64,000 nucleotides of DNA. Origin: Orbicella franksi (taxonomy: Eukaryota). Shown here piece after piece: positions 4,443 through 53,312 of the stretch; within the stretch, counting starts at the first letter, position 1, and each line of letters opens with the position of its first letter. Below the pieces are notes generated by a model. The model searched no databases. It was given only the letters and a program-made list of their open reading frames with translations, and was not told where the DNA came from. Both the position numbers and the translations under genes were made by a program. The DNA lies in NCBI GenBank assembly GCA_964199315.1, contig OZ116699.1, forward strand, positions 18,972,001 through 19,036,000. Reading direction: 5' to 3'.

Positions 4443-4450
4443 TATAAAAG
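4443..4450 (+). promoter_or_regulatory. TATA box of the FGF gene (TATAAAAG)
   Basis: Consensus TATAAAAG 50 nt upstream of ATG 4493 and 98 nt upstream of ATG 4541. Confidence 0.7.
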
Positions 4451-4540
4451 CGGGCAATTTGTAGAGACCTCGTTGATTCATCTTCACATCGGATGTCTTT
4501 GCAAGCTTCTAGTCTGGTTTGTACTCTCTGCTACTTTGCG

Positions 4541-7500
4541 ATGAAGGCAAGCCTGTCAACCTTGGGTATTTGTGGTCTTATTTTAATCCTGTAAGTCTTG
4601 ACAATTTGAAAACGTCCTGTTTCAGATAACCAGTCACACGTGTGTTACTAATTCTTTCAGTCTAAGCTGATAAAAATCTCCATATCTCTTTCAGCCTTCC
4701 AGAAACGTTAAGCACCAGTCCTGCGGCTAATAGCCGGAGCTGGAAAACTAGAAGCGGAGAATCGCTACCTTGTCCTACAAACAAGTCCATTCCGGTACGT
4801 AAGACACACTGATCAACACCTTCACTTACGCACGATAAGATCTTTAACGAACCTTTCTTTTTCCATTCGTTATTCCAGATTTACGAGAGAAACATGTGCA
4901 ATTTTGTTGAGAGTCAAAAAAACCAAACGGACAACAACAATCATCCTGTGAAAAGAACTGTTCAACTCTTTTCGAGAGCTTCAAAACTCCACGTTCAAAT
5001 CATGAAAACGGAGCTGGACGCTCGCGGTCGAGACGGCTCAGGATTCGGTAAGAGCATTGGAAGTTAACTCCTTTTATGATCAATGATTCGTTTATGATTG
5101 GTAGTTGCGAATTAAGGTTCCTATTAATGGCCATTCATAGTTTGTATTTTAAATAATTTAAACTCGCATTGTTTTCTTATTCTATCAGTGATTTCTTTGG
5201 GGTATCATAAGTTGGCGGATGCTTTCAGAGAAAACATTTATATTCCAGCTAAACTAGAGCAATTTACTTGAGTGACATTAAGTTTCTCGACGTCATAGGC
5301 GTAAGACACGTTTGTGTTACCTTCAATCATTTTGTTCTCCTTTGTCGACGTTTCTTTATTACATTATGATAAATATCGTGGTAACCGCATTTCGTGATTA
5401 GTGCAAATGTTGAGGGTCATCTGGGTACCACATGGAAAAGCTTCCTTGGAAGCCATGCGCTCACGAAAGCTGAAAATGTGCTTTGCTGTGAGCTTCAAGT
5501 ACGTTTTGTTCTTTAACAAGGATATTAAAAAAACAGTATCGTCACAAAGAACGGATTCTGCGGCTTGTTCCATTCAATTACGGGTCACGTTTCTTCAAGT
5601 AAGTGCGAAAATGTGCCGCTATTGTTTACAAAGTAAAGCGAATAACCGGCGTCTCTCAGCATGTGCATCTTCTTCCGTCAACAAAGCAGCACAGAAAGTG
5701 AGAGAAAAACAGCTAGTTCAAAAGCCTCTTTCCAGAAAAGTAAAAAGGAAGACGTGATGATTTTTCCTATTCGATTAAATTTTGCCGGTTTTAGGGCTGG
5801 GTCGTTACGCCACAGGGATCGGAACCAACTGGACCCCACATGTTTCAGTTTTCCTCTCGGTCTCTTCTCTTAGAGTGGGACGTTTCGCGTGAATGCGGTG
5901 CCTGTCTCTTTTGAAATTGTCGTCTAATGATTCGTGAGTTGTGGTTTTTGCATTGTTTCTTCAAATACGTTATCCAAACTGATGTCTTGCCAGATGGCGT
6001 GATGATGCTAGATGATAGAATCATAGAATCTTGAGAAAGGTTATCGTGACGTTTGCCTTTGTCCTTTCTGCAACAGGAAAGATCTTCAACAAAACAGAAA
6101 GCCATTTTCATTTAGTCAGTACCGCCAGGGGTAGAAAAATACCAATCTATCGACAGCGACGAAAAAGAAATCTAAAGCCACGAAGCAAAATAAATTTCAA
6201 GCCACAAAGCTCTCTTCATCAAGTAGTGTAATTTAGTGTAAACTGTTTTGGCTGATACCCCGGAGCGAACGGTTAATTATTTCTGCTTTCTCACCGGTAT
6301 ATAACTGTATGCGTCCGAAAAAACGTAGTTTGGGAAACGATGTTGTTCAAGATCTTTTGTCACATGTAGCCAGTAACTGTGTTTTCGTCTGAGGCGTTTT
6401 TCTCTATATTAAGCACTGATATCACTGTTTATTCAGCTAGCCTGTACTAATAGCCTGACAAAACGGATCGTAGGGTGCAATCATTTTTGCGGGTTCAGTT
6501 GACATTATAAATTCTTTTGTAATGGATATCGTTTTGTCCAACAAATCATGAGCGTTCTCAGCTTAATTCATCTTGAACGTTGACATTATTTTCTCAGTTG
6601 TTCGGTGTTGGGAGTTTTGTTGAGTATCCGCGCGACCACTGCACTGTTTCACCTGTTTCGCTTCTGTGATCATTTAGAGAAAGCTTATGACTTGCGATTT
6701 TGCAGCTGCCTCTCGCTTTGAGTCAAAAACAAGGTCATATTTTTCATTGACTAATTTTGTCCGGAAGCGGAGCGAATCTCTTATTAAGTAAACTAATAGG
6801 AGTGATGTGCTAAGGAGGAAAGAATGATCAAATTAATTCCTTCTACTATTACACACAGTGGACTTTAACAGTTCCTCTGACTTCAGTAGATTCAAACTTA
6901 AAACAAAGAAAATCATCTCAAGTTTACTATTATTATTGGCGAGGATAAGAATAAAAAAAAAAAAGCAAAACAAACAATACCAACCACTCCGTTTCAAACT
7001 GTTTACAGGGCATGTCTGATCATGACGTAGAGGGATAGGGACAGGGGGAAGAGGGCGGGAAGGAACAAAAATAACCTGCCCTGCCCTATATGGCCTATTG
7101 GTGATACCGTTACTCAACCTCGTTCCCAGGTCTCTCATCTTACCGCCCCCTGGAGTGAGCGAAGAGAGACCCTGGTTGGGTCTGGTCACGTGCCACTTTG
7201 ACAATTAAGAACATCAGGGAGGGGTCCTCTGTAATCAGCAATTTGTCACGTTGAGCTTTGTCGAATTCGAAGTATCGCGCTGCGACTGCCATTACCCGCG
7301 GCGTTTATTAATACTTAGCTTTCAGGCTGAAATTTCGAATAATATCTATTCCAACGTTTACCTAAAGGTTAAGCAAGTCTGTCTCGAGGCAATTTAGTGG
7401 TCTTGATTTTCAGTGTTGCCGTCTTACCCACTGGATTTATGGAAAGTCAGTCATTTCAACTGTGGACGTGGAGCAGCGCAATTTCATCCCGGAGTAATTG

Positions 7501-10500
7501 TTGTTTCTTCTTTGAATGCACTTGATCAAATTGATGTTCAAGGAATATTTTAATCTTTGTCCCTGGAGAGCCAATACTTAGAGCCTTAAAACATATCTTG
7601 CAATAGAAACGAACCTAAACAAAGTATAAGCACGGCATGGCAAATTTATACAGAGGTGTCACTCTGAGAAGTGACGTGCAGTTTACAGCGGAAACCATGC
7701 AGACCTGCGATCTCTAAAAATATGCTGTAACATAATCAAACGACTCCACTCTACTTATAATTTCCATTTCTTCTAATAACACAGCATAAAAAGTGCCCCT
7801 CAGAAACACGCGTGAAGTAAAGAAAGGTCGAAAGATCGAAAATTAAATGACAATGTGCACAATTGTCACGAACCGTTGGAGTCACGTACACTAATTTATT
7901 AACGACACAATAAAAATTTTCTTTTTCTTTTTCTTCTTCTAGCCTCCTTTCGGTCGAAGATAAATCCAGTTTATCAGCAACGACGGCGAAATGCATACCG
8001 CGACGAGTTCGTTGTATTATCCTTCGCGCTCTGCAAAGTTCGGGGCGTCGACGGCGCGGTGAAACTTCAATAGATCTTTTCAACCTTTGACGCTCCTTTC
8101 GAAGTGACCTTAACTTTCAGAGATCAATTAAAAGGCCCTGAATTCTCTAGAATTATTTAATCGCCGCTCACAAGACCTGCACTTCATTCTGAGGTAAAGC
8201 TGAGTCAAAGATCTTCCATACACAGCCTCGGTCGCGGTGTGTAATTCTCCATTCGCCTTCTTGAAGAGATTTTTACAATATGTAACGTCCTTCACTGAAC
8301 CATAGAGCCTTCAGCGACTTGGATTTCCGCTATTAGATGATGGATAAGTTTTCCTCGACGTTTGCAGAATACTACCGCCGGACATTGCCGCAGAACATAT
8401 CGTTCTTGGTTTACTTTGGTGACAACACATCCCGCACTCCCGTGGGCTAAGTATAGACAAAATTCCTACTAGGCCGCCCATCCCTTCAATAATTTAATTG
8501 TCATCTCCCAGATTCTGGGAGACACGTGACCAGACCCAACCAGGGTCTCTCTTCGCTCGCTCCAGGGGGCGGTAAGATGAGAGACCCTGGGAACGAGGTT
8601 GACCGTTACTCTCCATTATCGTTATTCTCTCTCTCTATTTCTGTTTTCACTCTCACGCCTGACTTTTCTATGCTGTGCAAGCAAAGCACTCACTGAACGT
8701 GAGTGGAAGAATTTCCAGCTTTATTACAAACAACCGTGTAACTCAGTGAAAAACGCAGCGGGTTCAAGATCAAATTAGTTCTCAGAAAAGTTATTTTATT
8801 CTGAAGATGAGGATACGGGGAATTTTGCATTTTTTTTTGTATTATTTCCACTATCCGCAAGGAACATTTTCCATTGATCTGCCACATTATCAAATTAAAA
8901 AGGAAAAAAAGCTGTTGTAATTCCAGTTCCACGCGACGAGGTATTCTGCAAATCACAAAAAGTCACCTATCGGTAAATAATTTGAATTCAAGGGGAAAAC
9001 CGATGTATTTTTTAGTATTTCTTTTTGATGAAAACAAATTCAGTAATGGATTTGCCTCAGCATAGCTTTTCTTTCAAACTTGACCGTATGTTACGTTCCA
9101 CCAAATGGACCACCGAGTTTGGTCTGTACAATTTGAAAAATAAACAATGGCGGGTATCTTCTCGGCATGAATTAGTATTTCCCTGAAACATTGCATGTTG
9201 ATCAGATTTTCAGACAGTTTTTCGCTGACGGGAACTCATGATAAGCTCGGACACATATATGTCGCCAGGCTGGTCCGCTCGATTTTTATCAAGGGAGCAG
9301 ATTTAACCTATGCAGCTGAAGAAACCTTCGTTAGGTTGTTTTTGCTTCTGCCATCTGGTATACAACTGAAAGTTGTCGTACTTATAAACCCGCCCCAGGT
9401 GGAGCAACTCAGCAAAGTTTTATACAGTTAGGCTCTGCCAAACCGTTACACAGTTATATGCCATTTTGTCCGTAAGGTAGCCCTGTCGAATAGATCCCAC
9501 ATCATGGTAACCGTTTTAAATATTTACAATAACAGCACTACATCCTTTTTCTATATCCTTGTTTGACACAATTTGAAAGGCCCTTTTAATCAATAGCGCC
9601 TAAATTGAATAACAGTTTTTCCTATCCTTTTTTAACCTTCAAATTCCCATCCATTCCCCTATAAAACCCCAGGCTGAGAAAGATACTCTTTCGGTTGAAA
9701 CCTCCCTAATTAGTCCATCAGAGGGAGTAATCCTCCTCGCAGCTACATTCCTTGATTCCCAGTGCTTTCATAGTTTGGCCCAGAAAACAATTTTGGATTT
9801 AAGGTAATTCCCCTGAAATAAAACTGCACATAGATTTTTATTCAAACTTTGTCCAATGAATATTTATCATATGAGAACTTAAATTATAAAATAAAAAAGG
9901 GGGATGCCCATGCTCGTTAAGAACCAGTAAGGCATTGAAAATGTCCCATTTTAGAGTTATTTAATGCTTTTTACAAGAACGCATTCCAAGTTATTGTAAA
10001 CTCTTTGTGAGCCAAGACTCATGAAAACACGCCTCAAACTACAGTCAATACTTGTGTCGGAGACAAATAAACTTTTTAAGTTTGATTTTGACAGACAGCA
10101 ATATCCTTGTTAAAATATTGGAACCAAACTGCTTGCCACGGCTATCAAACTGCAAAATAGAAAAGACTACAGTACAGCTGCTAGTTTCCTTATTTATTCA
10201 ATTTTCAACAACAGAAATCCGATCAGTCTTTTCTCCTGCAAAGCTAATGATTAGTTGATTAAAATGACTGGAAAAAAATTGCGGGTGCCCGAGCTCGATC
10301 GTGAGCTATAGCCATTTTTCAACTAACAGAACTCAATATCAAGGCAAATCCGCCATGTTTTCAATGTGCGCGTGCACGAACGCGCACTAATGACGCCATA
10401 AATTATGCGCAGTAAGGATGTGCAATGCAATACAGGGGAATGACCTTAATCGCAGCGTTAGACCTGTAGACCCTAGATCTAGATCGTGTCAATTATGAAT

Positions 10501-13500
10501 CCCTCTTCACCCAGGATCGATGGCTTCCGACAAATTTTTGAAAATGCTATGAGGAAGTGTGAGATTCCATGCCAAGGAAGTCTGAGAAAGTTCTATTTGA
10601 GGAGTAGCAAATGGTGATACCTAGTGTGACTTTTTGATACAAAAACCGGCCTAAGTTAAGCACTTTTAGTAGTTTGGGATTTTTAAGCGCAGACTTATAG
10701 ATTCTCATAAATAATTATAGATTCTCGTAAACATACCAGAAGAGGTCAGTCCGGTGCTACCGATTACTTGACCATTGTACCACCGAGAAAAATACTTTCT
10801 TGTACATTATCTTCATAACCAACGAAACAACGGCCGGTTATTTTTTTTTGATTTTTACTGATTCGTAGTAACCATAATTTGTTTTCACTTCCCCCCTCCC
10901 CCCGCTCAAGAAAAAGCTGCTGAAAAAAAGACTTAACGGCCCCATATTACACTATCCACGAAATTATCGCCCGTTAGTTGAATACTACAAATTCACTCTA
11001 ATGTCTTGCTTTATTCCCATCGCTTGTTTATATACGAACTAAATTTCCATTGCAAGACAGCCGTGTGTTTACATGGTTAAGTTTTAAATCACCTGGGGAG
11101 TAGAGGGTTATGAAATAATGCTGTTGGACAGCTCTATTTTTTTTTATAGAAGTATAAGTTTATATAAGTTTAGGTTTGTTTAAATAACATGAACATAATC
11201 TCAATACGTTGTTACTTTTTCATCATCGCTCTTCAGACAGACAGTGTTGGTTCTCGGTTACTTTAGATTCATCTTATATTCTCGTTGTATTTTGATTGCT
11301 GTTTTCATGTTGTATTCCTTTAAAACCACCCTGACATCATCCTGCATTCATTCTGTAGCGAGGCTGGTGTTGGAGTCTGACAACTTTGGTCGAATAAAGA
11401 TTCGAGGAGAGAGTACAAATCGCTATCTCTGCCTGAACAAGAAGGGTGAACTCGTTGCCAGGGTGAGAATTTGGTTTCCCTTAAAGGCCATTTCTTAGTT
11501 TCCTTTTGCCTCTGCGTCCAAACGATTGTCCGTGCAAAAATATCCATACAAAAATGTTTCCCACAGAAACGTCTATTTTTTTTTAGGCTACGCAAACTCA
11601 TATTTGTAGGTCCCGTTTTGAAACAGAGGCGAAGGGTAACTTAGAAATGTGCTATTGTCTCTTCTTATACAGTTCATGCAAGCTCGCGTATTTGGTATCA
11701 CTGAAAACCCTGGCTTGCAATACATAGTGTGACAAATGTTCAGTCACTGTCGAAGGCTGAAGCTTCTCGTTTGTCCAGCCATGCTTTCTCTCTTTGCTCG
11801 AACTGCCCTGGCGCGACTATCTAAAGAGAGACTAGAGTGCGGACACACCCACAAGAGTTGTTCGTTACATGAGGATTACGCTGAACAATTTGTGATTACC
11901 ATGCATTTTGTGGAGGCGCGGTGGCCACATCGTTAATGCACTCGACTCCGGATCGAGCGGTCCAGGTTCGAGCCCCGGGGCCTGTTTCTTGAAAGTCCCG
12001 GAAACTTTTCGGGCCCGCAAAGCCATTTTTAATTCATATGTATCTAAAATAGAAAGGTGTATACGCCTGAAACATCTTGTATGAAGGAAACTTCTGGTCA
12101 TATTAAGAATATGTAAATAAACAGTTATGTAATCATAAGGTTTGAGATTTTGCTACGGCTTTCCGGGTGCGAAAGCTTTTCGGGACGATCGAGAAACGGG
12201 CCCCTGGCCGGAGGACATTGTTTTGTGTTCTTGGCAAGACACTTAATTCTTACAGTGCCTCTCCCCACTCAGGTGTACAAATGGGTACCGGCGAATTTAT
12301 GATCACTGCTGAGGGTTTTGATGAATGGAACTTGCCGTGATGAGCTTGTCTCTCAGTAGCTGAAATAAAGCTACCGTATTGCTGCTCTCATGGGTGGCGC
12401 GGTGGCCTCATGGTTAGTGCGCTCGTCTCCGGTCAAGCGGTCTGGGTTCGAACCCTGGCCAGGGACATTGTGTTTTGTTCTTGGGCAAGACACTTTACTC
12501 TCACAGTGCCTCTCTCCATCCAGGTGTATAAATGGGTACCAGTGAACTTAATGCCGAGGGTAACCCTGAGATGGACTAGCATCCAATCCGGCGGGAGTAG
12601 AAATACTCCTAGTCGCTTCATGCTACAGAAACTGGGATAAGCCCGGGCCTGATGGGCCACTTAGCTCGTATCCATGCTTTACCTTTTATTGCTGCTCTCA
12701 TGAAATGTAAATGCATGCGAGCATGACTTCGATTGGCTATCAAGCGTCTTTCACCACTAAAAGATTTCAACGCCTCCTTGCCGGTCATGGCTGCTTCTTT
12801 TGATCGACTCTATAAGGTCTTTTATTGGAGATTTCGCCATTTGACAAATGTAACGTCTTATGCATGTGTAAATTTTCTCGTTATACAAGAAACACACTAT
12901 TAGCTAAACATCTTTAAACATTTCTATTTTTTAACCTGTTTATACAGACCAGAGTGGTGTATAAAAACAATCCCTTTTCATTTTTAAAAGATGTGAAATA
13001 AGGCGGCTCGGGTGAACAAGCCTTTCACTACAGGGGTGGGCCCATCAAAAAATTACAAAGGTTCGAATTTAATTTGTTAAATAGATACTGCATATCAATG
13101 CAATCTCAAAGCTGCTTTTTAATTAAGTTTTGTTCACTGTTATGCTGTTCAATATGCATCAGTATTTAAGTGAACAAGACTTAAGGCTCACTTAAGCAGG
13201 TTAAATGCTGCGAACAGGTACGAAATACATCGAGCGTTCTTCCCCAGTTGGATAACTCGAGAATGATAGCAGATTGTACCAGGTGTAGCAGATAAGTGGA
13301 TCCCCGCCTTACGGACACCACATAGATACGGCCACCTCATTATTCTGGTCACTCTATTCTGGTCCGAACAAAAGCTCAGTCAGTCATTTTCTTATTTAAC
13401 GAACCCCTTTAATACGGCCATCTCGCTAAGACGACCGGATTTTTGTGGCCCGTTGATGACCGTTAGTGACTGAGGATCCACTGTATTTAGAAATGTTAGC

Positions 13501-25638: not shown

Positions 25639-25932
25639 CCGCCCACGAACTAAAGCCATATCTGTGTTATTGTGATTTGTGACGTCACTAACACGCCCCT
25701 TCGCTGGATTTGCTTCGCTTGATATTTACGTTTTCCTCGTTCGCGTTGTGCGTGGTAAGGAAAAACGGTCAAAACGATAACCCGTGTACCTTAGGATTAC
25801 TCTAAACCTTCGACTGATGTATAGCTAATACCGATTGCGAAATTTTCCACGTTCGAAGTGCAGTCTGTTTATCTGTTTATTAAAACGCCATATTGCTTGC
25901 TGAAGACAGTCTCTCTCAATGTGACTTCCGGT
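25639..25932 (-). promoter_or_regulatory. Putative Sprouty promoter: GC box (25639-25644), palindromic CRE GTGACGTCAC (25679-25688), ETS site ACCGGAAGT (25924-25932)
   Basis: Motifs read directly from the sequence, just upstream of the CpG-rich predicted first exon. Sprouty is an established ERK-induced gene. Confidence 0.55.
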
Positions 25933-28900
25933 TTCATTCTGGTCAGAACAAAGGCTGCAGACAAAGGGTTTGTTCGTGTGTCTTTAGATTTACATAATGA
26001 ACATACTAAACATATTCTGCAAATTGCTTAAAAGTCCAGAGAGGTTTATCATGTCTTGCCTGTGAGCTGGTTCAGTTGAGTCTTGTACCGGTTTTCGTCG
26101 ATTTTTGCGTTTCTTTTTAGGGTTCTCAGTTAACGACGCGTTTTCCTTTCAGCTGTCAACTTTTTGAAAACATTTTTCTTGCATTAATTTTGCGATCAAG
26201 TTTGACGGCGACAGGAGGTTGGATGTTTGTATTTCTTTCTTTGCTTTGTACGTGCGGTAAGAGAAACTACAGGACTGGATCTAGCCTTTAAGACACTTGA
26301 TATGGATGTAATTGATGACCCACGTTTGGGGGGGTTCCAGTCGCCCTTAATGAACATCAACCACTATGCCATCAAAACCCTTCACTTCCGATGTCAGTTT
26401 CCGATTTGTGTGATGGGATTTAAGCTGACAACTGTGTCTGTCGAGAAACGAGCAAGCACTCGAGAAAAGCGACTGCGAAATTAGAAAAATCCAATATGTC
26501 AACTTTCAATAGATTTAATCATCTGGTGGAGCGCTTTGAAGTCAGGCGCATGCAGATGAGAACAGACCGTCATTTCAAGTCCGGTAACCCAACACTTGAA
26601 AGTGGCGTATTGGCCCGGAGGGATGTATGAATATTAGATGCCTTGAGATCTGCTCTAAGGCTAGCGTTTGGGAAAGCAACTAAGCCTTTACAATCCTTCT
26701 TTCCTTGACTTGGGAAAGAGAAAAAGGAATTTTGTTTAGAAAATGTCCAGTTATTTACCAACGTTTTCAAACAACCAAAGAAAACGATATTGCTTGACTT
26801 TCACAACTGAAAAAGAACAATATACACATTTGCATCTCCATAAACAATATAGTTTCCGGTCGTCAGCTTTCTCGCTTTTTTCCAGTACGTTCTTCGAGAT
26901 ATTTACTTTCGATCAGGTTAGAGCCTAATGCAATTTTCTAAACGTGATCGTAGACTTCTTAAACAGATTTTGCTTCAACCGGGCCGATCTCTTTTCTAAA
27001 ACTGCCGAAAAACCGAGTCCTTTGCACTTCAAAAGGAACCGAAAGTGCCAAAATGTAATTATGGCTCAAGAAGAGTGTCCGCGTCTTTGTTAGGGGTTTC
27101 CTGCTTTGTCCATAGGTCTATTTTCCTTCAAAACAAACACCTGCTTAGGGGTTCGTGACGTTGAATTAACGCCAGCAATCTCGTTGCCAATTATTTTGCG
27201 TCTCCGCGAAGCTGAGCTGCGAAGGAATGCCACTGTGTGTACACAAGCAAATTAAATTCAGGCGACCAAATGCGACAGAACTTGATTCAGCAAACATGGG
27301 GGGCTTTTATGAATCAACTGGGATGACAGTTTGGATGAATCGTAATTTCAGAGCCGCGGGGAGCGTAAAATAATAATTGCTTGTGCGTGATACACTAAGC
27401 GCCCGACCAAATAACATGCAAATTTTATTTTCGTTATTTGTGGATACACAGGGTACCCAGACTATGGTAACAACTTTCTCTGGAGAACGAACAGACAGAG
27501 AAATTGGTGATAAAAAAGATAAACTGTAGGCTTTCCCTACCGACGTGAAGATTTCATTAAAGCCGATTCTCGCGTGTTTTCTCATACTCATTTCAATATC
27601 TTTCACCATTTACGATACTTATCGTTTCTTTTACTGCAAATGAAAGTCGAAATGAAAGAATTTTGGAATCAGTGGGAAGCATACGCCACTGATAGAGCCA
27701 CTTCGTACTTTTGTTGTTCGCCTTCAATAAGAAAAACACAACTGTACGAGATATATTTCTTATTTAGATAGATATCATAGTTATACAGGCTAGTCATACG
27801 AATATCCTGTGAAATGTTCCTCTTCTTGTAAATCAAAGGTGATACCTGGCTTATGCACGACCCAGAGCACAAATACCAGGTGCGTATTCAATAACCCAGT
27901 GAATTAATCCTAATTTTCTATTGGAAGACTCGTGCACGATAAAGAACCAAATAGACATTGAGCTCTATTGAGACCATCATTAAACCAACCTGCCAATTTG
28001 CCTGTCTCAGTTTCTTACGTTGAAAGAGTAGAAGTGTCTTGGGCTTGTTTGGAAGATTTTTTTCCTTATTTAACCTTTTATTCTTATTTAACCTTTTATT
28101 CTAGAGAGATAACACTCTTTAAGGATCTGTAGAGGTCGATTTACATGTATAATTTAAGTCGATGACATTAAAACTTGCCAGACTGAAAAATACTATGATC
28201 TATTGTAACTGCATGACTACAGCCAATTGTCTCAAAATGTTGTTTGACATAGCTCAGAAGAACCCGTTGAAGGAAAAACAAATTGGATTGAAAAAGACAT
28301 GAATAGGGTTATGATAAGTGAGCACTGAAATATCTAATCCGAGATCCGTGAAGCCAGAACAAAATTAAAAGCGATCGTGTAGGGTAATACAGATTGAACT
28401 CAAAATCTTTGCAAAGCAAGTATACAACTAGGCAGTTAATTTCATTCATATCAACACAAAGTGGAAGCTTATTGACGAGGAGATAAGTGGCATAAAACAT
28501 CCGATAAAACAAGTGTTTATAGGAAGTAGACAAGGCATGGACAATTTTCTTAACACGACGACGTAAGGCCAGGAAATAAGCAATTTTTTGTCTTTTTAAT
28601 ACACCACAGACGTTTTCATAGCACGTCTTAATTAGTTGATGTAAAGGATTTATTTTATCAAGTTACTTATTTGTGTACTGCCGTTTTCGATCCTTCCGGA
28701 TTTTCAAGTTCTTAAAATTTTTTTCAGCGATTAAAGTTTATAGAATGTTCCATGGTATGAAACATGATCAAGTAACATGTAGAAGACGTGCCCTTGTAGT
28801 TTAGTGGATCAGGCGTTACGTAATGCAAGGACGACTTAAGATGAGAGGTTAAAGTTCTTTTTCTCTTCTCTTGTTCTCACTGATCTCTGCTTCTAATGAG

Positions 28901-31900
28901 TTCTCTCAGCATTGCGCATGGCTGTGTCGACGATCAGTCTGTCGTTCAAGCCGCTGAAGGACTTGTCTCGCTGCGGCAGAATTCTTACTTTTTGCCACTA
29001 ACTTGAGTTAGGAAATATTCTTTCATGGTCTTGATTTCTGTTAAGGTCTCGTGAGTTTAACAACAGTAAAACCTCCACAACTCAGTACATCTAGATCTCA
29101 GTAGAAGTTAAAGCAGTTTGAGTCAAACGAAAATCGTTTCCGTGACTTTGATTGTCTCAAAGGCATTGCCAGTCAAGTAATCGCCTCATTTAGAAGTTAA
29201 AAGACTAAGGGTCTTATCACAGTTAAGAACAGATGTCGAGTACCAGATTTGTACTGGCTTTGTAACACAAACACCGGCGGCATATTGGATTATCAAACAC
29301 AGGAGATTTATCGCAACGATATTCACCGCAACCCAAGAGCAAAACTTAAACAAATTCCTTTGGCTCTAAAACATCTTGTTCACGCAAGGGAATTTGTGTA
29401 ACGTCTACCGAATCGAGTGATGATTCTGTATTCCTTGTTCGTACGTTTGTCAGAGCTTGTTAAGGTGGCACTCCAAGACACTACAGCTTTCTCAGTGATC
29501 ATACTCAATGTGTCCTCATTAAGTACTCGAGATATTTGCTTTGCTCTTTTTTTCTAGTACCGACTTTAAACAAACACCGAATTGCGCATGGCACGCCCTG
29601 ATTTCTCGAGCAAAGTATCCGTAAAATTGAATTATGTCAGTCAAAAACAGCTACGAACAAGAAATCAACGACGTACAGCCAAGGCAGGGCTTTTGTCAAG
29701 AAACAGCCAGTCAGATAGACTTATGTAATCGACATTAAAATATTGCCGGACTTACTGGTGTGGTTAACAAGTCGTCAAGTAATTATAAATAAGTCCAAAC
29801 TGTCTCTGGTTGAACCTTTTATGACTGACAGACTGTAGCCCGTGGAACTGAAGTAAACAAATGAACAACCAAAGTGAACACAAGCAGTTCCTTGCTTATC
29901 TTTTTTATTTTTGTAAAAGAGTGATGCCAAATCCGCGCGCATGTTTTTACCTGCGGTGCTAAACTATGACAACAACCTTATTTCCACTCGTATATTGTAA
30001 ATTAACGTTGTTCAACAGCCAAAGTACATTTTTTCAGTCATAGTTAATTACTTTTGGTTTGTCAGTTCAGCAGTTGCAAGCTTCTGTTGTGGATCTCCTT
30101 ACCTCTATCTGTCTGTTGTTTTTTTATCAGTTGTCTGTCTAAGTGTTTTGTCCTGATATTTATTTGTTTGTGTGTGTGCTTTTTTAGTAGCTTAGTAGTT
30201 AAATTCAATCTCTGAATATATAGACTTTTCTCTAACTGATTGTTCTTTTGTTTATTAATGTTTTTAATTCATTTCAGTGGTCTTCAGTCCTGCAAACTGC
30301 GAACTGTCTGGCTGAAGTTTTTGGCCTATTCCCGTGTCTCTTTATCACATTGTGACCCTTTCAGTAATATAGTCAGAGCTGGCTATCATACAGTCTAATA
30401 TATGGGCGTCGATATAAACCTCGTTTCTGTAGAGTAACTTCTTTTCCTATTTTGCTGGTTTGTCTGATTGTTTGTTTGTTTGTTTAGCTGTTTTGTTAGC
30501 TCAGGTCTGATATCCATGCTGTCCGATTTTACACTTTATTTTGCAGTTGCTAAAAACTGCGTTGATCCCTCTAGCTCTGGATTATGTCTGATAAAATTTA
30601 CATGCATATTTAGTTTTTAAACTTTATTGTGTTTATCTATTTCCTTGACTCCTCCTGTCTGATGTCTCCCAGATCTACCTGTTTTACGTATCTTTGTTTG
30701 TTTACATGTCTTCTCTAGCTTCAACGTTTCTCTTATATTCAGAGACAGCTCTACAGCGCCATGCATTATATAACTAAAAGTTGCAGTCATTTTTATTTTC
30801 CTTTGCACTTTGATTTCTTTACCAAGATGAGCTACCTGGCCCACTCGTTTCTGCAGCTGGAGAACTCACAGTACCCAGCAAATATCCCAACCCCAAAATA
30901 TGCACAGATTGTACCCTCTAATGTTCACTAAGGCTTGAAAAAGTCCACTTGGAAATGTTAAGCGACTCAGCGTTGAAGGAAGGAAACGCCTAGAAGCCTA
31001 TACTTGGGTTACGTTATTAGTGAATATAACCCAGGAGAATCATAAATTTCAGAAACAATGGGAAGTAAAACATCGAAGTGGCTTGAGCAAGAACTAGTCT
31101 GCGCATCTCACTAACTGCCTCTGCGCTTTGCTTCTCTCGCATTCTATCGAGGTCTCTCGGTTACAGTGTATATTAAATTGTAATAGTTCAAGAGACTAGA
31201 TCATAGTCTCTCGTGTGGTTTAAACATCAGTCAAACTAGAAGTAGTCCAAGCTTTTGTAACTTGAAAAAATCCATCCCTGGAAAACACTCGGCCTCTCCG
31301 ACTGCTTTGGGTACTGGCGAGCTCACTTAGTCCGTTTGAACTCTATAACAGGCAAACAAGTCTTTCAAACCGGATGAAGCTCAGTCAAAAATACCCGTCC
31401 GAAACAATTAAGAAAGGCCGTTATAACTCACTAGAATGCCATGAATATGGTCTAATCTAGCCTGGACGAGATTTAAACTGTCATAACTTGACTTCTGTCT
31501 GTCCGATTAAAAACAAGTTTGAGTGTATTTCTATGGGAAAATGAGGTCTTCGTTACTTAGATATACGCTCAGTCAATTACTATAGCTCTGTAAAATTATC
31601 TTTGTGAAGGAATACGCAATAATTCAGTGGCACTCAGATAAAGCAGTTGACGCAAGAACATGTATTCCGTGGGCCCAAGACTGGTCGGCCTACTTAAACA
31701 GTCTAAAAGGGGAAAGGAGCTAAAAGACTGCCAGCGCATCTTATACGACTATATAGATGACAAATTGATAAGAAACCATCTTGGCCACTAAGCCATGGCT
31801 AAAAGACGTTCAGTGAAAAATGACAGCGTACACTGCTCTGTTTCGAAGACGGTGGAACGTTTTAGGGTGTGGACGAGTTCAGGAACATGTACAACGATTG

Positions 31901-34900
31901 CCTCCTTACAAAACGTTTAAAATGATGAAAGACAGATGTAGAACACTGGCGTCTACAAGTAGCGTTAAAGGCGTATCTGTCCTTAAAGTGCACTTAACAT
32001 CGCCTGAGAATTTGCTGAAAGCTTTGTAAGTTGATCTTATTATCAATTACCTGAAAATATCTATAGGACTGTACTAAGAATTGTATCGCTTTGACTCTTG
32101 ACTGGAATGGAGTTTCAACTACTCCTTCTGCTTTCGTAAACATTGCGAGGGTCTGTTGAAAAGGTTCATCCTCCTTGGACGGTTTTCGAGATCTAAACAG
32201 ATTTGTGGTTTCCATGCTGCACTCACTCATGATTTTGATGTAGCCAATGGACACGGCGACATTCCATTCTACTGCATAGCTGAGCAAATCATTTCCACGA
32301 AAAGGGGCCATTCCAAAGCAACACACATTACTTATTAGTTTTGTCGGCAACTCAAATTAATTGTTATCTCTCGCTGATAGATAGTTTTATCAAATAATCA
32401 GTTAGAGTAATGTTTAGCTGGCAAAAGAATTGAATCAGTATAAACAGTGACAAGCAATTTTCTAAACTTACTGAATAAATGAGGCGGTATAACTTCTTTA
32501 ACTACTAAAATATCGTCCGCAATTCCTTTCTCTACTGCCATAATTAACTTCCCTTTCACACCTAAAGCGAATTTTGTCAGTCGACTTTTTTTCTTTATCA
32601 GCCAGCGTGTTCAGCTACAAAAACGAAAGTACTATAATTGCCAATACAGTTTAGCAATTAGTCATAAACTGATGATGATTGATGGAATCAACGGAGACAG
32701 AACTGTCGAGTAGAGACACTAGAGTACGTCTCAATATCGGTCAGTAACAAAATTAGTTACTGTTTCGACTCTGCTAGATATTTCCGTCGGACGGAAGAAG
32801 TTCACATTTCTGAGACATTTCAGTCGGAAGGGTTAGCATGCTAACTTAATCGATCCAACCTGAAACAGTACGAAAGAGTCTACGAACTGTTTAGGCGTTT
32901 TCCAGGCTTGAGCCGGGTGCAATTTCCTAAGTATACATGCATGCATGTGGCCAAGCTTCTAACTCTTTGATGGTACAATGTAACTTCTTCACGATTAATG
33001 ACCGAAAACGTTTCAAAACGGTTGGACTAGCTACTGGAAGCCTACTGTATCTTTACAATGGCTCGCCTTCTTAGAATCAAAGGATTAAGGCAATGCTTGT
33101 ATGCATGGTACTCTGAGTAGGTAATCCATTCCTCTGTATGTCCATTGTACGTCGACACCGGCGAAAAAGTCTGTCCTATCATCAGCAAAGGTATTAAATT
33201 CATGTAAATCCCGCTAGTGATTGTGTTGAAAGTCGACCCAAGGGCAAAAGTTGATTCGACACAGGGTTTCTTTCTGCTATACAGCTCAAGTATTCTTTCT
33301 TTGTTTTCGAAGAATGAAAATATCTCTTTTCTGACTGATGACACCTATGTGTTTTTATTCGCTTTTAAAGCCTCGCATTTTGTTTCGTTCACGAAGCAAC
33401 ACTCCCTGGCTCTCCGGCTTCACCGGGGATAGCTCAGTTTAGTGACGCGAATTTAGCTGCTGCTTCTGAACTTTTTCCGGCTGCATCTTATGCAACCTCT
33501 ATTCTTTCATCAAAGTTGGTAAAATGTGCGTCTGCCCTGCATGCGTGATCTGTGATTAACGTTTTCATCATTACTGCCACCCAATAAGCAAAATCTGTTA
33601 CATGGTTATGGACTTTGGGTCTCACAAAACCGACCAAACGACACCAGATTTCCGCTCTTTCGCGTCTACGAAGATCAGTTGCGCTTTCTTTGCAGCTTTG
33701 GTCAAAGTAGTGCATAAATTTCACGGTTAAAAAAAGATAAGGACTTCGATAACTTACCTTGCGTAAGTCTTGCTTGGTTGTTTATCTGGGTACTGTAATA
33801 TAAAGTGGCTACGCTCCTTTCTGCAAGCAGTTAGAAAACTTTACAGAAGGCTTTTGGACTAGTGCAGTCTTCCGTTCGTTCGCAGTGATTAACCCACGAC
33901 AACTCGCACAATACTTGATCGATTCATTGGTTGCCTAATTATGACATAAAAAGTTAGGAGACTTTTGTTTCAGCGAGTTAGGACCTTCGCCACAAAGAGC
34001 CCTATTCGACCGGAAGTTCGGTGAACAAAGACAAGCCGTGTACTGAGAGGCGGACTTTTCCCGCGCATTAATCACGCAAATTATCTGTGAACGAAGTTTA
34101 GCCAGAATGCACCTTAACCGGTGTCTAAAAATACCATATAGTCAAAGTTTTTCCATGCGTATCTGATGACGAAAAACATTGCCTTAAAAAACTAACCTTG
34201 TAGGTGCTGTGTGCTTAAAGTAAATTAGCTATCATTAGATCTTAAACGGGTAAACAACTCAGCTTTCCGAACGAGTTTTGAAAGTAATCAGGTGTGGTGC
34301 AAACGCAGCTCGTCTCGACTCTAAAGGAGAAGGGAGACATTAGAAAATGCGTGTTTAATGTTTAGCAGACTTCGTAGTCTTGCGCCCAATTTAGGGTTTA
34401 TCGTAGTTAAATCTTTATGGATGCATTTTCATAACTCCAATTAAAAGGCTCAGGTATTGTCTTTTCGAGACTATCAAGTAAATGAATTCAAGGCATTTCC
34501 TGTTAGATGGCGAGTATTAGTGCAAATTATATTTGTAATTATAGAACCAGAAAACCTTTTGGCGTTTTGTCAAAAGCGAAGCACTATCATTTTGCCTTCA
34601 ACAAAGTTCCAGTGTGACGTGCATTCGTTGTCCATGTTCATATCCTTTACAAAACCAAGTATATACCTTAACCATGAACCAGACCTCCCACTACATATTC
34701 ACTAGCTAACTTGCATTTGCCATTGTTTTGAGAACAAAACAAACTCGAGTTTCCTGTTTTTCTTACTTTCTTTGTCCCGTTTCCTGTTTATCTTACTGGC
34801 AAGACTTTACGCTCTACAGAGATTACTGACTTAACGGTTCCTCAACATGATTGAAAATTTCTGCGAGTTAATAATAACCCTTTGTTTTTTTTTATCTGTT

Positions 34901-35729
34901 GGGAAACAAAATTCGCTCATCCAAGTCCATTAATTTGATCAAAAGTTTCCCTTATTCGTAATTAAAAATCACGTGACCATACATGAAAATTGCCCAACAA
35001 GCAATTGCTTCAACATTAAATCAATATGTGCAGTAGTTGAAATCTTGCTCACTTCTTTGAGAGCCAAGAATTATTGCAAAAAATTTTATAGCCAGTTATG
35101 ATGAGCCAGTTATTATTAGTATGAGCATTTTTTCTGATCAAAACTCCGGACCTGGCAAGGGTGAATATTTCGTTCAACCCCTGTTAATTAATTGGGAGGT
35201 GTCAGAGAGATGGAGGGCGGTTCAACCTTGTTATACGAGACTTATAAGAGACAGAGACATGCCAAAATCTTAAAGAATGCACTGAAATTGTATTCAAGTC
35301 ATTTGACAATTGAGAGAGTAATTAAATTTTCCCTTTGCTGCTGTTGAAATTGGCAAAAACGTAACACGACAACAATTTAGCTAATTTTTTTCGTGGCGTA
35401 CCTGTAAACTAGCTTTTTAGCTAAGCGTACCGACCACGTTAAATATATTGATTGATTGATTCTAACATGCCGGAACCCTCTCAGGCATTGTTTGACGACT
35501 GTGACGTTAGAAACGTGAACTACATGAGTGGTTTCCTACTCATGCTAAAGTTCAAATCTTGTGAAAAGGAATATTGTGGAAAGGAATGTTCTTACAAATA
35601 AGTGAAAGCGTTGGATAAGAGGGATACACGAGACAAAAAGTCTTGGGCGCTGGTCTGTTCCGGATTTAGTGCAAGAAATACTGCAGCTTCGGCAAAGGTT
35701 GTCCTACAGAGGCGTAAAAACCATGCGTA

Positions 35730-35925
35730 ACAATGCCGATAGGCATTATGAGTAGTGATAGTTTATCTTGGCTTGCATGATTGAAGCTTATGGTGTTTCG
35801 GTAAGAACGAAGGAAAGGGCATGAATACCCGTATTTGTGTTGTCTTCTTCAATGACGCTAAAACACCACGAGCATCGATCGAACAACAATGAAACACCAT
35901 TACCCATAATACCTTTCGACATTGT
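35730..35925 (+). repeat. Fold-back element copy A (unassigned three-copy family)
   Basis: Imperfect terminal inverted motifs ACAATGCCGATAGGCATTATGAGTAGT / CATTACCCATAATACCTTTCGACATTGT and internal GCATGAATACCCGT. Homologous to 56017-56307 and 59689-59872. Confidence 0.7.
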
Positions 35926-37293
35926 GTTGCACGCTTTCTAGAAACAGCTGTATACGCACCAGAACTCACTCAAGCTTCACTTAGAGTGTGAATAAAACAA
36001 TTTGAAATTCAAGGCTTGTACTACGGAAATTGGGAGATTCATGACCAACGTTTCCACTACAGTAGTAGTGCGGGTGCTAAAGTTCTCTACGCCCCTGAGC
36101 GCCAGCGCTACAGGGACATAGATCTAGCTAACGGTCTAAAATTCAGTTACAACAATGCAGATGTATGTGTACATGAACATATACGAAATAGAAGTTATCA
36201 CTAAACAAACCTCTTCTTGCAAAGTGAATGAAGAGAAGGTATGTAAGAGTAGCGGTGAACAATCAGTTCAGGGTGACCCTTCAAAAACAGCAAATTCCAA
36301 CTAGAAGGACTCCCTCGGAAACACTGTAGACCTGTCCATCAAATGTTTGGTTGGTGATTGTCAGAAACGGGAAAAGACTTGGTATTGTGCATGAGCTTTT
36401 GCTTCCCATGTCACTGGTGGTCACGTGATTCTGATCTGATCCCGTCTCACGTGCGCCAAACTGACAGGTGGAAGGGGATTGGCTGAAAGTAACCCTGTGG
36501 CTTGTTTCCTTTTTATTTAACCTTCTTGACTCCAAAGAACCCTTTCTTCCCAAACTAGGCTCTCGCCCGCCAGGTCATTTTTCTCAAATTCTTCGATCTG
36601 ACATTAATAAAACTGTTTGGCTGTCAGTGAGAATAAACATGGACTTGAAGCTGATAAGATTAAGGTACGCACATATGGTGCAACTCTGTGCGTTGAACTA
36701 CATGTAAATTTTCCTCTGGGTATAACAAAGTAGATATGTCCACTAACGTTGCGGGAAATTTCGTGGCACAACCGCACAATCATCATTTATTTCACGGTTT
36801 CTGGTTATTCAATTTTCTGAAATCGGTACAGAATGTGTGCTGATTGAGAGGAATCGGTAGTAGTAAAATGGAGTGAAGAAATAGGTGTGAACACAGGGGA
36901 GTGGTGGGAGTAAGCGAAATCTTTTCTTTCCATTGTTGTTCTCTTTGGCTGTGATTGATGTATTCATGTGAAAATTCCAGTATAACACGAAAAGAATTTT
37001 TATCTTTCCCGACCTCTAATCATCAGCCATTTAATCATGTTTACTGTACCAAAAAAACAAATGCTTGTCTATAAAAGTAAATTTATTTAATATATTCGAT
37101 ATAATAGATCTATTTGTCAGTGCTTATTCTCCTTATTTGTAGAAGAAAGACACTAATGTTTCAGCCCTCTGTACAAAAGCATCAGTTATTTCTTCTTTTC
37201 AGCTTTTCCTTCGCCTTTTGCAGACTCCACATTTTAAAAGCACTTTAACCATCTCTCAAGTAACTCGGTATAATGTTTTTCCAACACTGCAGA

Positions 37294-37481
37294 AATAGGC
37301 CATTTCTGAGTTACCTTTTGCCTCTATTTCAAAACGAGTCTTCTTGCAAAACCTTTCATATGAAAATTAGTTTGATTTGCATGAAAATGAAGCTGTAGGC
37401 CAAACGCATTTTCATGTGAATGGTTTCGCACGTAGACTCGTTTTGATACTGCGGCTTAAGGCGACTCGGAAATGGGCAATT
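37294..37481. mobile_element. MITE just 3' of the FGFR stop (partial second copy about 11614-11656)
   Basis: TIRs AATAGGCCATTTCTGAGTTACCT / AGGCGACTCGGAAATGGGCAATT plus an internal inverted pair AAAACGAGTCT / AGACTCGTTTT. Confidence 0.8.
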
Positions 37482-37779
37482 GATTAACATTTCTGCGTTA
37501 GTTAGAAGAATGTTTTTCGTTTTAACTCGGTTTATTATCGTAGTTGACTAATTTTCAGTATATTTTCGAACAATATCTATGCTGGCTTGTTGTACAGTAC
37601 ATCACTGAGAGGATCTTCTCGGATAGTCTTCGTGTTACAGTCCTTGAATACTTTGTTTCCATATTTGTGCACAACCCGCAAAATACTTGTGCGAGAACCA
37701 TAGATCAGGATCGCGTGACTGTGATTATTCGCGTGACTCCGGTTCGCGTGACTCCACAATTACTTCATACCACTTGCGT

Positions 37780-52233
<14,454 letters not shown>

Positions 52234-53312
52234 CTTAAAGCGAGCGGTTTCCTCCCTTTCTTGATCTTAGCCCTCTTGATTTCTTCCTCAGCGAGGTTAA
52301 GTCCAATAACGAAGTCACAATCCAGTGAAATATTCGGCAGCGGCGTTCGTCAATCTGTCATAATGAATATCACAGTGTTAGAAGGACAAATGTTTCGTTC
52401 GCAACTCCTGATAGCGAGTCAATTGTAGTAACTAGCTCGCCGCAGTGTTATGAGACATGACTCGCTCACTTCTCTGGAAACACTCATGAATTATGAATGC
52501 ATCGGCATCTTCAAAATGTCACGTTCCCAGTTATTTACTCTTGGGTTATTGGGCATTAGACATGAGCTAACTTTGTAGTGGCCGAACAATACTTGACGAA
52601 GAAAATCGCAGCGTAACTGATCGCGCCCTAGACTTTAACGCGTTGTTGTGTCAAACAGACGGACAACACACAAATCGAGTTGAAGGGAGAAGAGGAAATG
52701 AAATACTTCGACTTCCTGCGAAGTCTACTGCTGATAAACAAGACAAAATTAACATACCTGGAAAAACTCTGTTCCTGAACATAGATTACACGGCGCAACA
52801 ATTCGATTTCCAAAATCGTTTTGCGAATTCTAGGAAGTGTCGAGGGGTAATTTAGGTCGCTTACGAAGTTGTTGATTGTCCACACTTGGACGAATTCAAT
52901 AATCGACCTCTTAGGTGCAGTCAACTGAACAATGATCACGAATTACCCTCGCATTGACAGCGGTCAGATGCACTCGTGCTGAGATAACACGCCGAGTAAC
53001 TTCCGGTGACAGAAAACCTCTCCATGCCACCCCTGCGGTGTTTAGTGAATGCGCTGTTCACTTTACTTTGGCTCCCACAGGCTACAACTTTAAAGAATAC
53101 TAAAGTAGTATAGAGATCCAACAGAGCTAAAGAACATCGTTGAGCGCGAGACATAGGGGTTTTCGTACGCGCAAAAACCGTTTTGGAGTTTGCGAAGTTC
53201 CGAGGCGTGGGTACGAGCATGTCCCGAGAGGGCTGCCCCTTTCCAGAAGGTTCGTTCCTGATGCATGACAAGCTCTTGTTTGCAGTTAGTGATGCGCTTA
53301 ACAACTGCTTAC

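Follow-up and report, generated by a model that had tools for sequence, protein, structure and literature searches.

In the stony coral Orbicella franksi, we found that the genes for an FGF8/17/18-like ligand (+ strand), Sprouty (− strand), and the receptor FGFR (− strand) lie next to each other across 47.7 kb (4541-52233), with all three open reading frames (ORFs) intact. These are located in a 64,000-nt stretch of contig OZ116699.1 (positions 18,972,001 to 19,036,000; hereafter the window), which has ~40% G+C and zero assembly gaps. Taken as a whole, the trio is fairly probably a conserved and inherited anthozoan block of three FGF-pathway genes, with an ERK/ETS feedback input to Sprouty. 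The adjacency itself is real and far beyond chance (a rough probability of ~1e-7 for Sprouty adjoining both an FGF and an FGFR gene, assuming 25,000 genes, 13 FGFs, and 3 FGFRs).

In our gene models, which were built by splicing at GT-AG sites and had their domains assigned by Pfam, the stop codons of FGF (17368) and Sprouty (24154) converge with 6.8 kb between them, and 12.9 kb separates the Sprouty ATG (24912) from the FGFR stop. Both spacers and the 47.7-kb span match exactly the values given in a preliminary description of this stretch, and the three gene identities proposed there hold by Pfam, by best matches in the PDB, and by the intact spliced ORFs. That no intact gene lies between the members of the trio was also borne out, with no credible Pfam match among 20 ORFs (81-144 aa) from the spacers, one FGFR intron, and the flanks; the sole match, to a microcystin-synthetase model (E 0.052), is at chance level. 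No additional FGF or FGFR copy was found within the window, and an Rfam search of the window gave zero matches.

Identity of the ligand gene

The ligand gene has five exons on the + strand and an intact ORF of 248 aa from the ATG at 4493 (232 aa from the ATG at 4541). Exons 3 to 5 are backed by orthologous exons elsewhere, and exons 1 and 2, together with their joins, are model only.

4443-4449, + strand: TATA box TATAAAA, a putative promoter element 44 nt before the first ATG (4493)
4493/4541-4590, + strand: exon 1, encoding a signal peptide or hydrophobic N-terminus, with the ATG at 4541 in frame; GTAAGT donor at 4591
4695-4794, + strand: exon 2 (modelled), pyrimidine-rich AG acceptor, GTACGT donor, frame kept
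4879-5047, + strand: exon 3, start of the beta-trefoil core, found by motif search; orthologous exon at 20649-20512 in L013
11359-11462, + strand: exon 4, 104 nt, Pfam FGF; conserved in L012 and L013
17093-17368, + strand: exon 5 with the stop codon, Pfam FGF; orthologous exons in L002, L012, and L013

Exons 4 and 5 carry the Pfam family PF00167 with scores of 36.6 and 44.6 bits (cut-off 24). Against the PDB, exon 3 matched only FGF8b and FGF18, and exon 4 returned FGF8b (3e-7, 32.5 bits), FGF18 (2e-6, 30.1 bits), and FGF2 (1e-3, 21.7 bits), placing FGF8b/FGF18 about four orders of magnitude ahead of FGF2. For exon 5, FGF18 was the top match (37.2 bits), and the ESM Atlas gave the generic FGF family and nothing finer. 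Exon 5 had no match in a protein index that, through its length filter and word index, leaves out FGFs of full length. The best match of each core exon to solved human FGFs, rather than a phylogeny, supports a putative FGF8/17/18-like assignment, and the label originally given to this gene is thus upheld in every core exon (3, 4, and 5). A subdivided first coding exon is typical of vertebrate Fgf8/17/18. In the coral model, three exons precede the 104-nt exon, the third of them backed by conservation in L013 and the first two modelled only.

Identity of Sprouty

24154-24912, − strand: Sprouty coding sequence, single exon, 252 aa and stop (24157-24912 without the stop), Pfam PF05210

The Sprouty domain (PF05210) scored 79.4 bits (cut-off 25) in the − strand ORF at 24154-24933. 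Between 25146 and 24019, the genome runs colinear with a transcript-derived protein, which makes Sprouty intron-free over this range. Among the 45 Sprouty homologs found, the nearest named ones are from Oculina patagonica (89%) and Montipora capricornis (76%), and one transcript-derived protein is 99% identical. In an alignment of anthozoan and arthropod sequences (A1), the cysteines of the Sprouty domain are invariant, and an N-terminal DEY..DYCVIAA block is common to the anthozoan sequences and does not align to the arthropod ones. The start context of the gene, GGATCAATGTTTGATGGCG at 24917-24930, is near-exact in four lineages, the most distant of which differs by one base, and it contains an out-of-frame upstream ATG that overlaps the region of the Sprouty start codon.

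Identity of the receptor gene

The receptor gene has 13 exons on the − strand and an intact ORF of 879 aa, running from the ATG at 52233 to the stop at 37780-37782. This ORF encodes a signal peptide, three immunoglobulin (Ig) domains, a transmembrane segment (a hydrophobic stretch), and a complete tyrosine kinase with the YY of the activation loop. The three Ig exons and the tyrosine-kinase exons recognized by Pfam all fall on the − strand between 37.8 and 46.5 kb.

52158-52233, − strand: exon 1, ATG and signal peptide, phase-1 GTAAGT donor
46426-46145, 44967-44671, 44169-43792, − strand: Ig1, Ig2, and Ig3, one exon each, phase-1 joins, Pfam Ig families
42923-42375, 41912-41802, 41566-41403, 41014-40892, − strand: exons 5-8, Pfam PK_Tyr_Ser-Thr (exons 5-12 encode the transmembrane, juxtamembrane, and kinase regions)
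40178-40108, 39860-39820, 39554-39458, 39224-39119, − strand: exons 9-12, continuing this region, Pfam PK_Tyr_Ser-Thr
37780-38124, − strand: last exon, C-terminal tail and stop (model; transcript coverage to ~37,100)

In the PDB, all 60 of the 60 best chains for a kinase exon are FGFR1-4, the kinase is 58% identical to that of a sturgeon FGFR4-like protein, and Ig2 and Ig3 gave near full-length alignments with the D2 and D3 domains of human FGFR1-4. The predicted window receptor is FGFR and not the kinase-less FGFRL1; the latter identity is excluded by the complete in-frame kinase, and the window receptor shares only 28% identity with an FGFRL1-like transcript (P0192). The best splice model joins Ig1 straight to Ig2, and no acidic stretch that could represent an acid box was seen in any frame between these two exons, where a small missed exon is possible. 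In an exhaustive search with the Ig3 exon, giant multi-Ig proteins crowded the matches, and Nematostella FGFRa, FGFRb, and FGFRL1 were not among them. Within the Ig2-Ig3 intron, there is a (GACT)n microsatellite of 28 copies (44266-44379) that reads as false ORFs of SVSQ repeats.

Gene order around Sprouty in other assemblies

For comparison, the DNA around Sprouty homologs was examined outward for FGF and FGFR exons, with the following outcomes (percentages are Sprouty identities to the window).

TARA Pacific coral (L002, L003, L008), 80%: FGF exon 5 convergent, 5.9 kb past the Sprouty stop
ERZ25071792 ctg18600 (L004, L011, L012), 65%: FGFR tail 13.8 kb upstream; FGF exons 4-5 convergent, 11.6 kb downstream
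ERZ25073755 ctg66198 (L013), ~47-52%: Sprouty (10001-10726) between FGFR kinase exons (134-2292) and, on the opposite strand, FGF exons 3-5 (20649-14543)
ERZ25072724 ctg139642 (L001, L007), ~44-46%: tight cluster absent; Sprouty promoter and ETS elements kept

In the TARA coral, all of the orthologous FGFR exons from Ig2 to the C-terminal tail are on the Sprouty strand, and 12.6 kb lies between the Sprouty ATG and the FGFR stop. The whole trio in ctg66198 is found within 21 kb. In all, at least four lineages, those of the window and of three further assemblies, keep the order and orientation of the three genes, with one sampled lineage lacking them. The expectation that the linkage would be shared by related anthozoans stands in part: three anthozoan-like assemblies, a highly diverged one included, share the arrangement, and the linkage is absent near Sprouty in ctg139642. 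In the FGF-Sprouty spacer of ctg18600, a transposase-like ORF (L012 7729-8556, Pfam HTH_animal) explains part of the greater length of that spacer. A second Sprouty search, started from the distant lineage, had no named sea-anemone Sprouty among its matches.

Conserved non-coding elements

Both spacers contain conserved non-coding blocks. Those of the FGFR-Sprouty spacer, together with the exact copies of the ETS site ACCGGAAGT, are as follows.

25101-25181, − strand: Sprouty core promoter element, 85% identity with L001, 95% identity with L013 over 61 nt, four-way alignment
25863-26013, − strand: conserved non-coding element of 150 nt with an exact ETS site at 25924-25932, ~1 kb upstream of the Sprouty ATG
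26764-26865, no strand assigned: second conserved non-coding block upstream of Sprouty, 78% identical to L004/L011 and 76.5% to L013
33889-34799, no strand assigned: 0.9-kb conserved non-coding block, 73.5% identical to the TARA coral
34009-34017, inside the 0.9-kb block: second copy of the ETS site, kept in the TARA coral
52999-53007, − strand: third exact ETS site, ~770 nt upstream of the FGFR ATG

The ETS site occurs three times in the window versus 0.32 expected. Its copy at 25924-25932 is exact and 0.88-1.04 kb from the Sprouty ATG in L001, L002, L003, L004, and L013, and in all five lineages, the clusterless one included, and the TATA element (TATA box at 25166-25176, ~255 nt upstream of the Sprouty ATG) is likewise conserved in all five. 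Both elements persist where the Sprouty proteins are only 44-52% identical to that of the window, which is unusually deep non-coding conservation for cnidarians.

In other animals, the pathway is established: FGF acts by binding FGFR, ETS factors are activated by ERK, and Sprouty, once induced, dampens signalling. By analogy, the mechanism that we propose for the coral locus has the putative FGF8/17/18-like ligand converging tail-to-tail on Sprouty and the predicted three-Ig kinase FGFR upstream of Sprouty on the same strand. Here, Sprouty would be transcribed from the deeply conserved TATA promoter, and the ETS-site element ~0.75 kb upstream of the TATA box would make Sprouty a direct target of the FGFR-to-ERK-to-ETS route, so closing a negative feedback loop. 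This conserved ETS element is likely the feedback input to Sprouty.

Aligned to the TARA coral, the window retains 22,674-27,467 (Sprouty with 1.5 kb downstream and 2.55 kb upstream), 28,629-28,768, 33,190-33,363, and 33,889-34,799. About 3.8 kb of the 12.9-kb spacer aligns, whereas the FGFR introns do not, which favors constraint over general alignability. The 0.9-kb block lacks codon periodicity (with the Sprouty coding sequence as control), has many frame-breaking gaps, and reaches a polyA RNA-seq depth of at most about 2. In the two polyA runs, depth was 40-60 over the last FGFR exon and its run-on to ~37,200, fell to ~6 by 37,000, and was essentially nil over 32.0-37.0 kb of the spacer, with FGFR coverage stopping at around 37,100. 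As an exon or as part of the FGFR 3′ untranslated region, the 0.9-kb block is ruled out by this polyA silence and by the absent codon periodicity. Runs labelled metatranscriptomic contain 60-80% of the words of the untranscribed spacer at 27468-37467, compared with 2-4% in the same-species polyA runs; carrying genomic DNA, as this indicates, they were excluded as evidence of transcription.

Inherited block or passive linkage

An early hexacorallian ancestor, or an older one, is the most likely source of the block, whose persistence has plausibly been helped by the candidate regulatory elements interleaved between the genes. Several observations nonetheless weigh against an inherited block with a feedback input. 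In ctg139642, the 19 kb upstream of Sprouty contained no FGFR exon and the 10 kb downstream contained no FGF exon, and since the Sprouty promoter elements are kept there without these neighbors, linkage is not obligatory and Sprouty regulation is not strictly dependent on the cluster. Moreover, the transposase-like ORF leaves the ctg18600 block unbroken, meaning that the spacers tolerate insertions, and the Sprouty trees do not place the comparison lineages, which leaves the depth of conservation undated. Added to this, no kinase FGFR was present on the Sprouty scaffold of Nematostella vectensis in the 2009 analysis (PMC2754479).

The first two of these points also suit passive inheritance, where anthozoan genomes rearrange slowly, each conserved block serves one gene, and nothing binds the trio. 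We regard this explanation as possible, though on the unlikely side. While all of the conserved blocks near Sprouty may represent the promoter, proximal enhancers, and 3′ untranslated region of that gene, the 0.9-kb block lies about halfway from FGFR to Sprouty and might act on either. Furthermore, the order, the orientation, and roughly equal spacers have lasted to ~50% Sprouty identity, while the FGFR introns diverged beyond alignment, and this counts against passive inheritance.

What follows from the locus depends on this point. If regulatory constraint holds it together, it would be a compact (20-50 kb) and conserved unit of a morphogen with its receptor and its feedback inhibitor, in which deletions and reporter assays could show how an FGF feedback loop is wired in a cnidarian. 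If the linkage is merely inherited, the trio would be a tidy but ordinary case of microsynteny.

Relation to Nematostella and bilaterian linkages

Nematostella synteny is taken throughout from the literature. Bertrand et al. (2009; BMC Evol Biol 9:226; PMC2754479) placed NvSprouty between FGFRL1 and FGF8a on scaffold 51 of N. vectensis, with FGF8b nearby, and suggested a functional link from this arrangement, linkage being defined in that study only as under 10 Mb. In their trees, NvFGFRL1 groups with NvFGFRb (PMC2754479). Like the coral locus, scaffold 51 has an anthozoan Sprouty between an FGF8/17/18-type ligand and a gene of the FGFR family. The two differ in that the receptor-like gene of Nematostella is kinase-less, whereas the coral receptor has a complete kinase, and in that the coral trio spans 48 kb with a conserved orientation and non-coding elements shown. 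All the same, the coral block is probably the same linkage as the published FGFRL1-Sprouty-FGF8a of Nematostella. In twist mutants of this anemone, sprouty declines along with fgf8a and fgf8b, and fgfrb is weaker (PMC13539428), a result that fits co-regulation and says nothing on cis-linkage.

Whether such a linkage had already been reported in anthozoans, a question left standing in the preliminary description, is answered in part by the 2009 account of Sprouty, FGF8a/b, and FGFRL1 in Nematostella (PMC2754479); the tight trio with a kinase FGFR was not found in the literature. Our search returned no paper on a tight trio in corals, and a coral FGF8/FGFR modelling paper omits gene position. 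The general idea is already published, in Nematostella, and what is new here is the tightness of the trio, a receptor with a kinase, an orientation kept across several lineages, and ETS and TATA elements that are conserved as well.

Related Ig-only genes were also encountered. One of these (L005 5552-12035) is an FGFR-like gene on the clusterless contig ERZ25072724 ctg139642, 71 kb from Sprouty, and another (L006 7286-17550) is in Acropora digitifera (DF970983.1). Both have the exon order Ig1-Ig3′-Ig2-Ig3, with one more Ig3-like exon in L005. As FGFR orthologs, L005 and the A. digitifera ‘FGFR4-like’ gene (L006) were rejected on exon order, on 50-60% identity, and on the lack of a kinase exon within 8-10 kb. 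They represent an FGFR-like paralog, which may be the ‘FGFRL1’ type of cnidarians or a series of alternatively used Ig3 exons. An Exaiptasia model annotated ‘Hemicentin-2’ (P0047) resembles a fusion of several Ig2-Ig3 units like those of L005 and L006.

These receptor-like genes bear on a further alternative, that of a secondary assembly of the trio confined to scleractinian-like lineages and unrelated by descent to the FGF8-FGFR linkages of Nematostella or bilaterians. We consider this very improbable. It would account for a Sprouty-linked gene that is kinase-less FGFRL1 rather than FGFR in Nematostella, for a linked receptor-like gene in the distant lineage ctg139642 that is the far-off Ig-only paralog, and for Sprouty trees in which the comparison contigs are not placed. 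Set against it are the FGF8a-Sprouty linkage that exists in Nematostella and the full trio of L013, which by Sprouty identity is as distant as the clusterless lineage.

A far broader version of the inherited-block reading makes the trio ancestral to the FGF8 module of the cnidarian-bilaterian ancestor. In that version, the genes would be held by interleaved ERK/ETS-responsive elements, the Sprouty-linked position would be the original home of FGFR, and the kinase-less Nematostella ‘FGFRL1’ and the Ig-only paralogs (Acropora, ctg139642) would be local duplicates minus the kinase. This seems to us improbable as a complete account, and we put forward shared enhancers, a pre-bilaterian origin of the cluster, and its later dispersal in vertebrates as hypotheses.

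In humans, the pairs FGF8/FGFR2, FGF17/FGFR1, and FGF18/FGFR4 are found on 10q, 8p, and 5q, respectively. An ancestral bilaterian linkage of FGFR with FGF8/17/18 (and FGFRL1) was proposed earlier by Itoh and Ornitz (2004) and Birnbaum et al. (2005), as these are cited in PMC2754479. The coral locus resembles this proposed linkage in having the ligand subfamily and the receptor on one chromosome segment. By contrast, the vertebrate FGF8/17/18-FGFR linkages extend over megabase distances, and the Sprouty genes adjoin neither partner. With the FGF8 synexpression group of vertebrates and Drosophila, the likeness is that coral Sprouty stands beside the pathway ligand and receptor and has a conserved exact ETS site upstream, which would fit ERK/ETS induction; the difference is that synexpression in vertebrates is achieved without physical clustering. 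The locus offers a concrete anchor for testing whether the loose bilaterian FGF8/17/18-FGFR linkages descend from a tight ancestral cluster.

Dispersed repeats

Two pairs of dispersed repeats were noticed in the window, with pair identities of 82% (first) and 74% (second). The first (12414-12631 and 18421-18637) has one copy in an FGF intron and one in the FGF-Sprouty spacer, and the second (38741-38894 and 45036-45209) is inverted, with both copies inside the FGFR gene.

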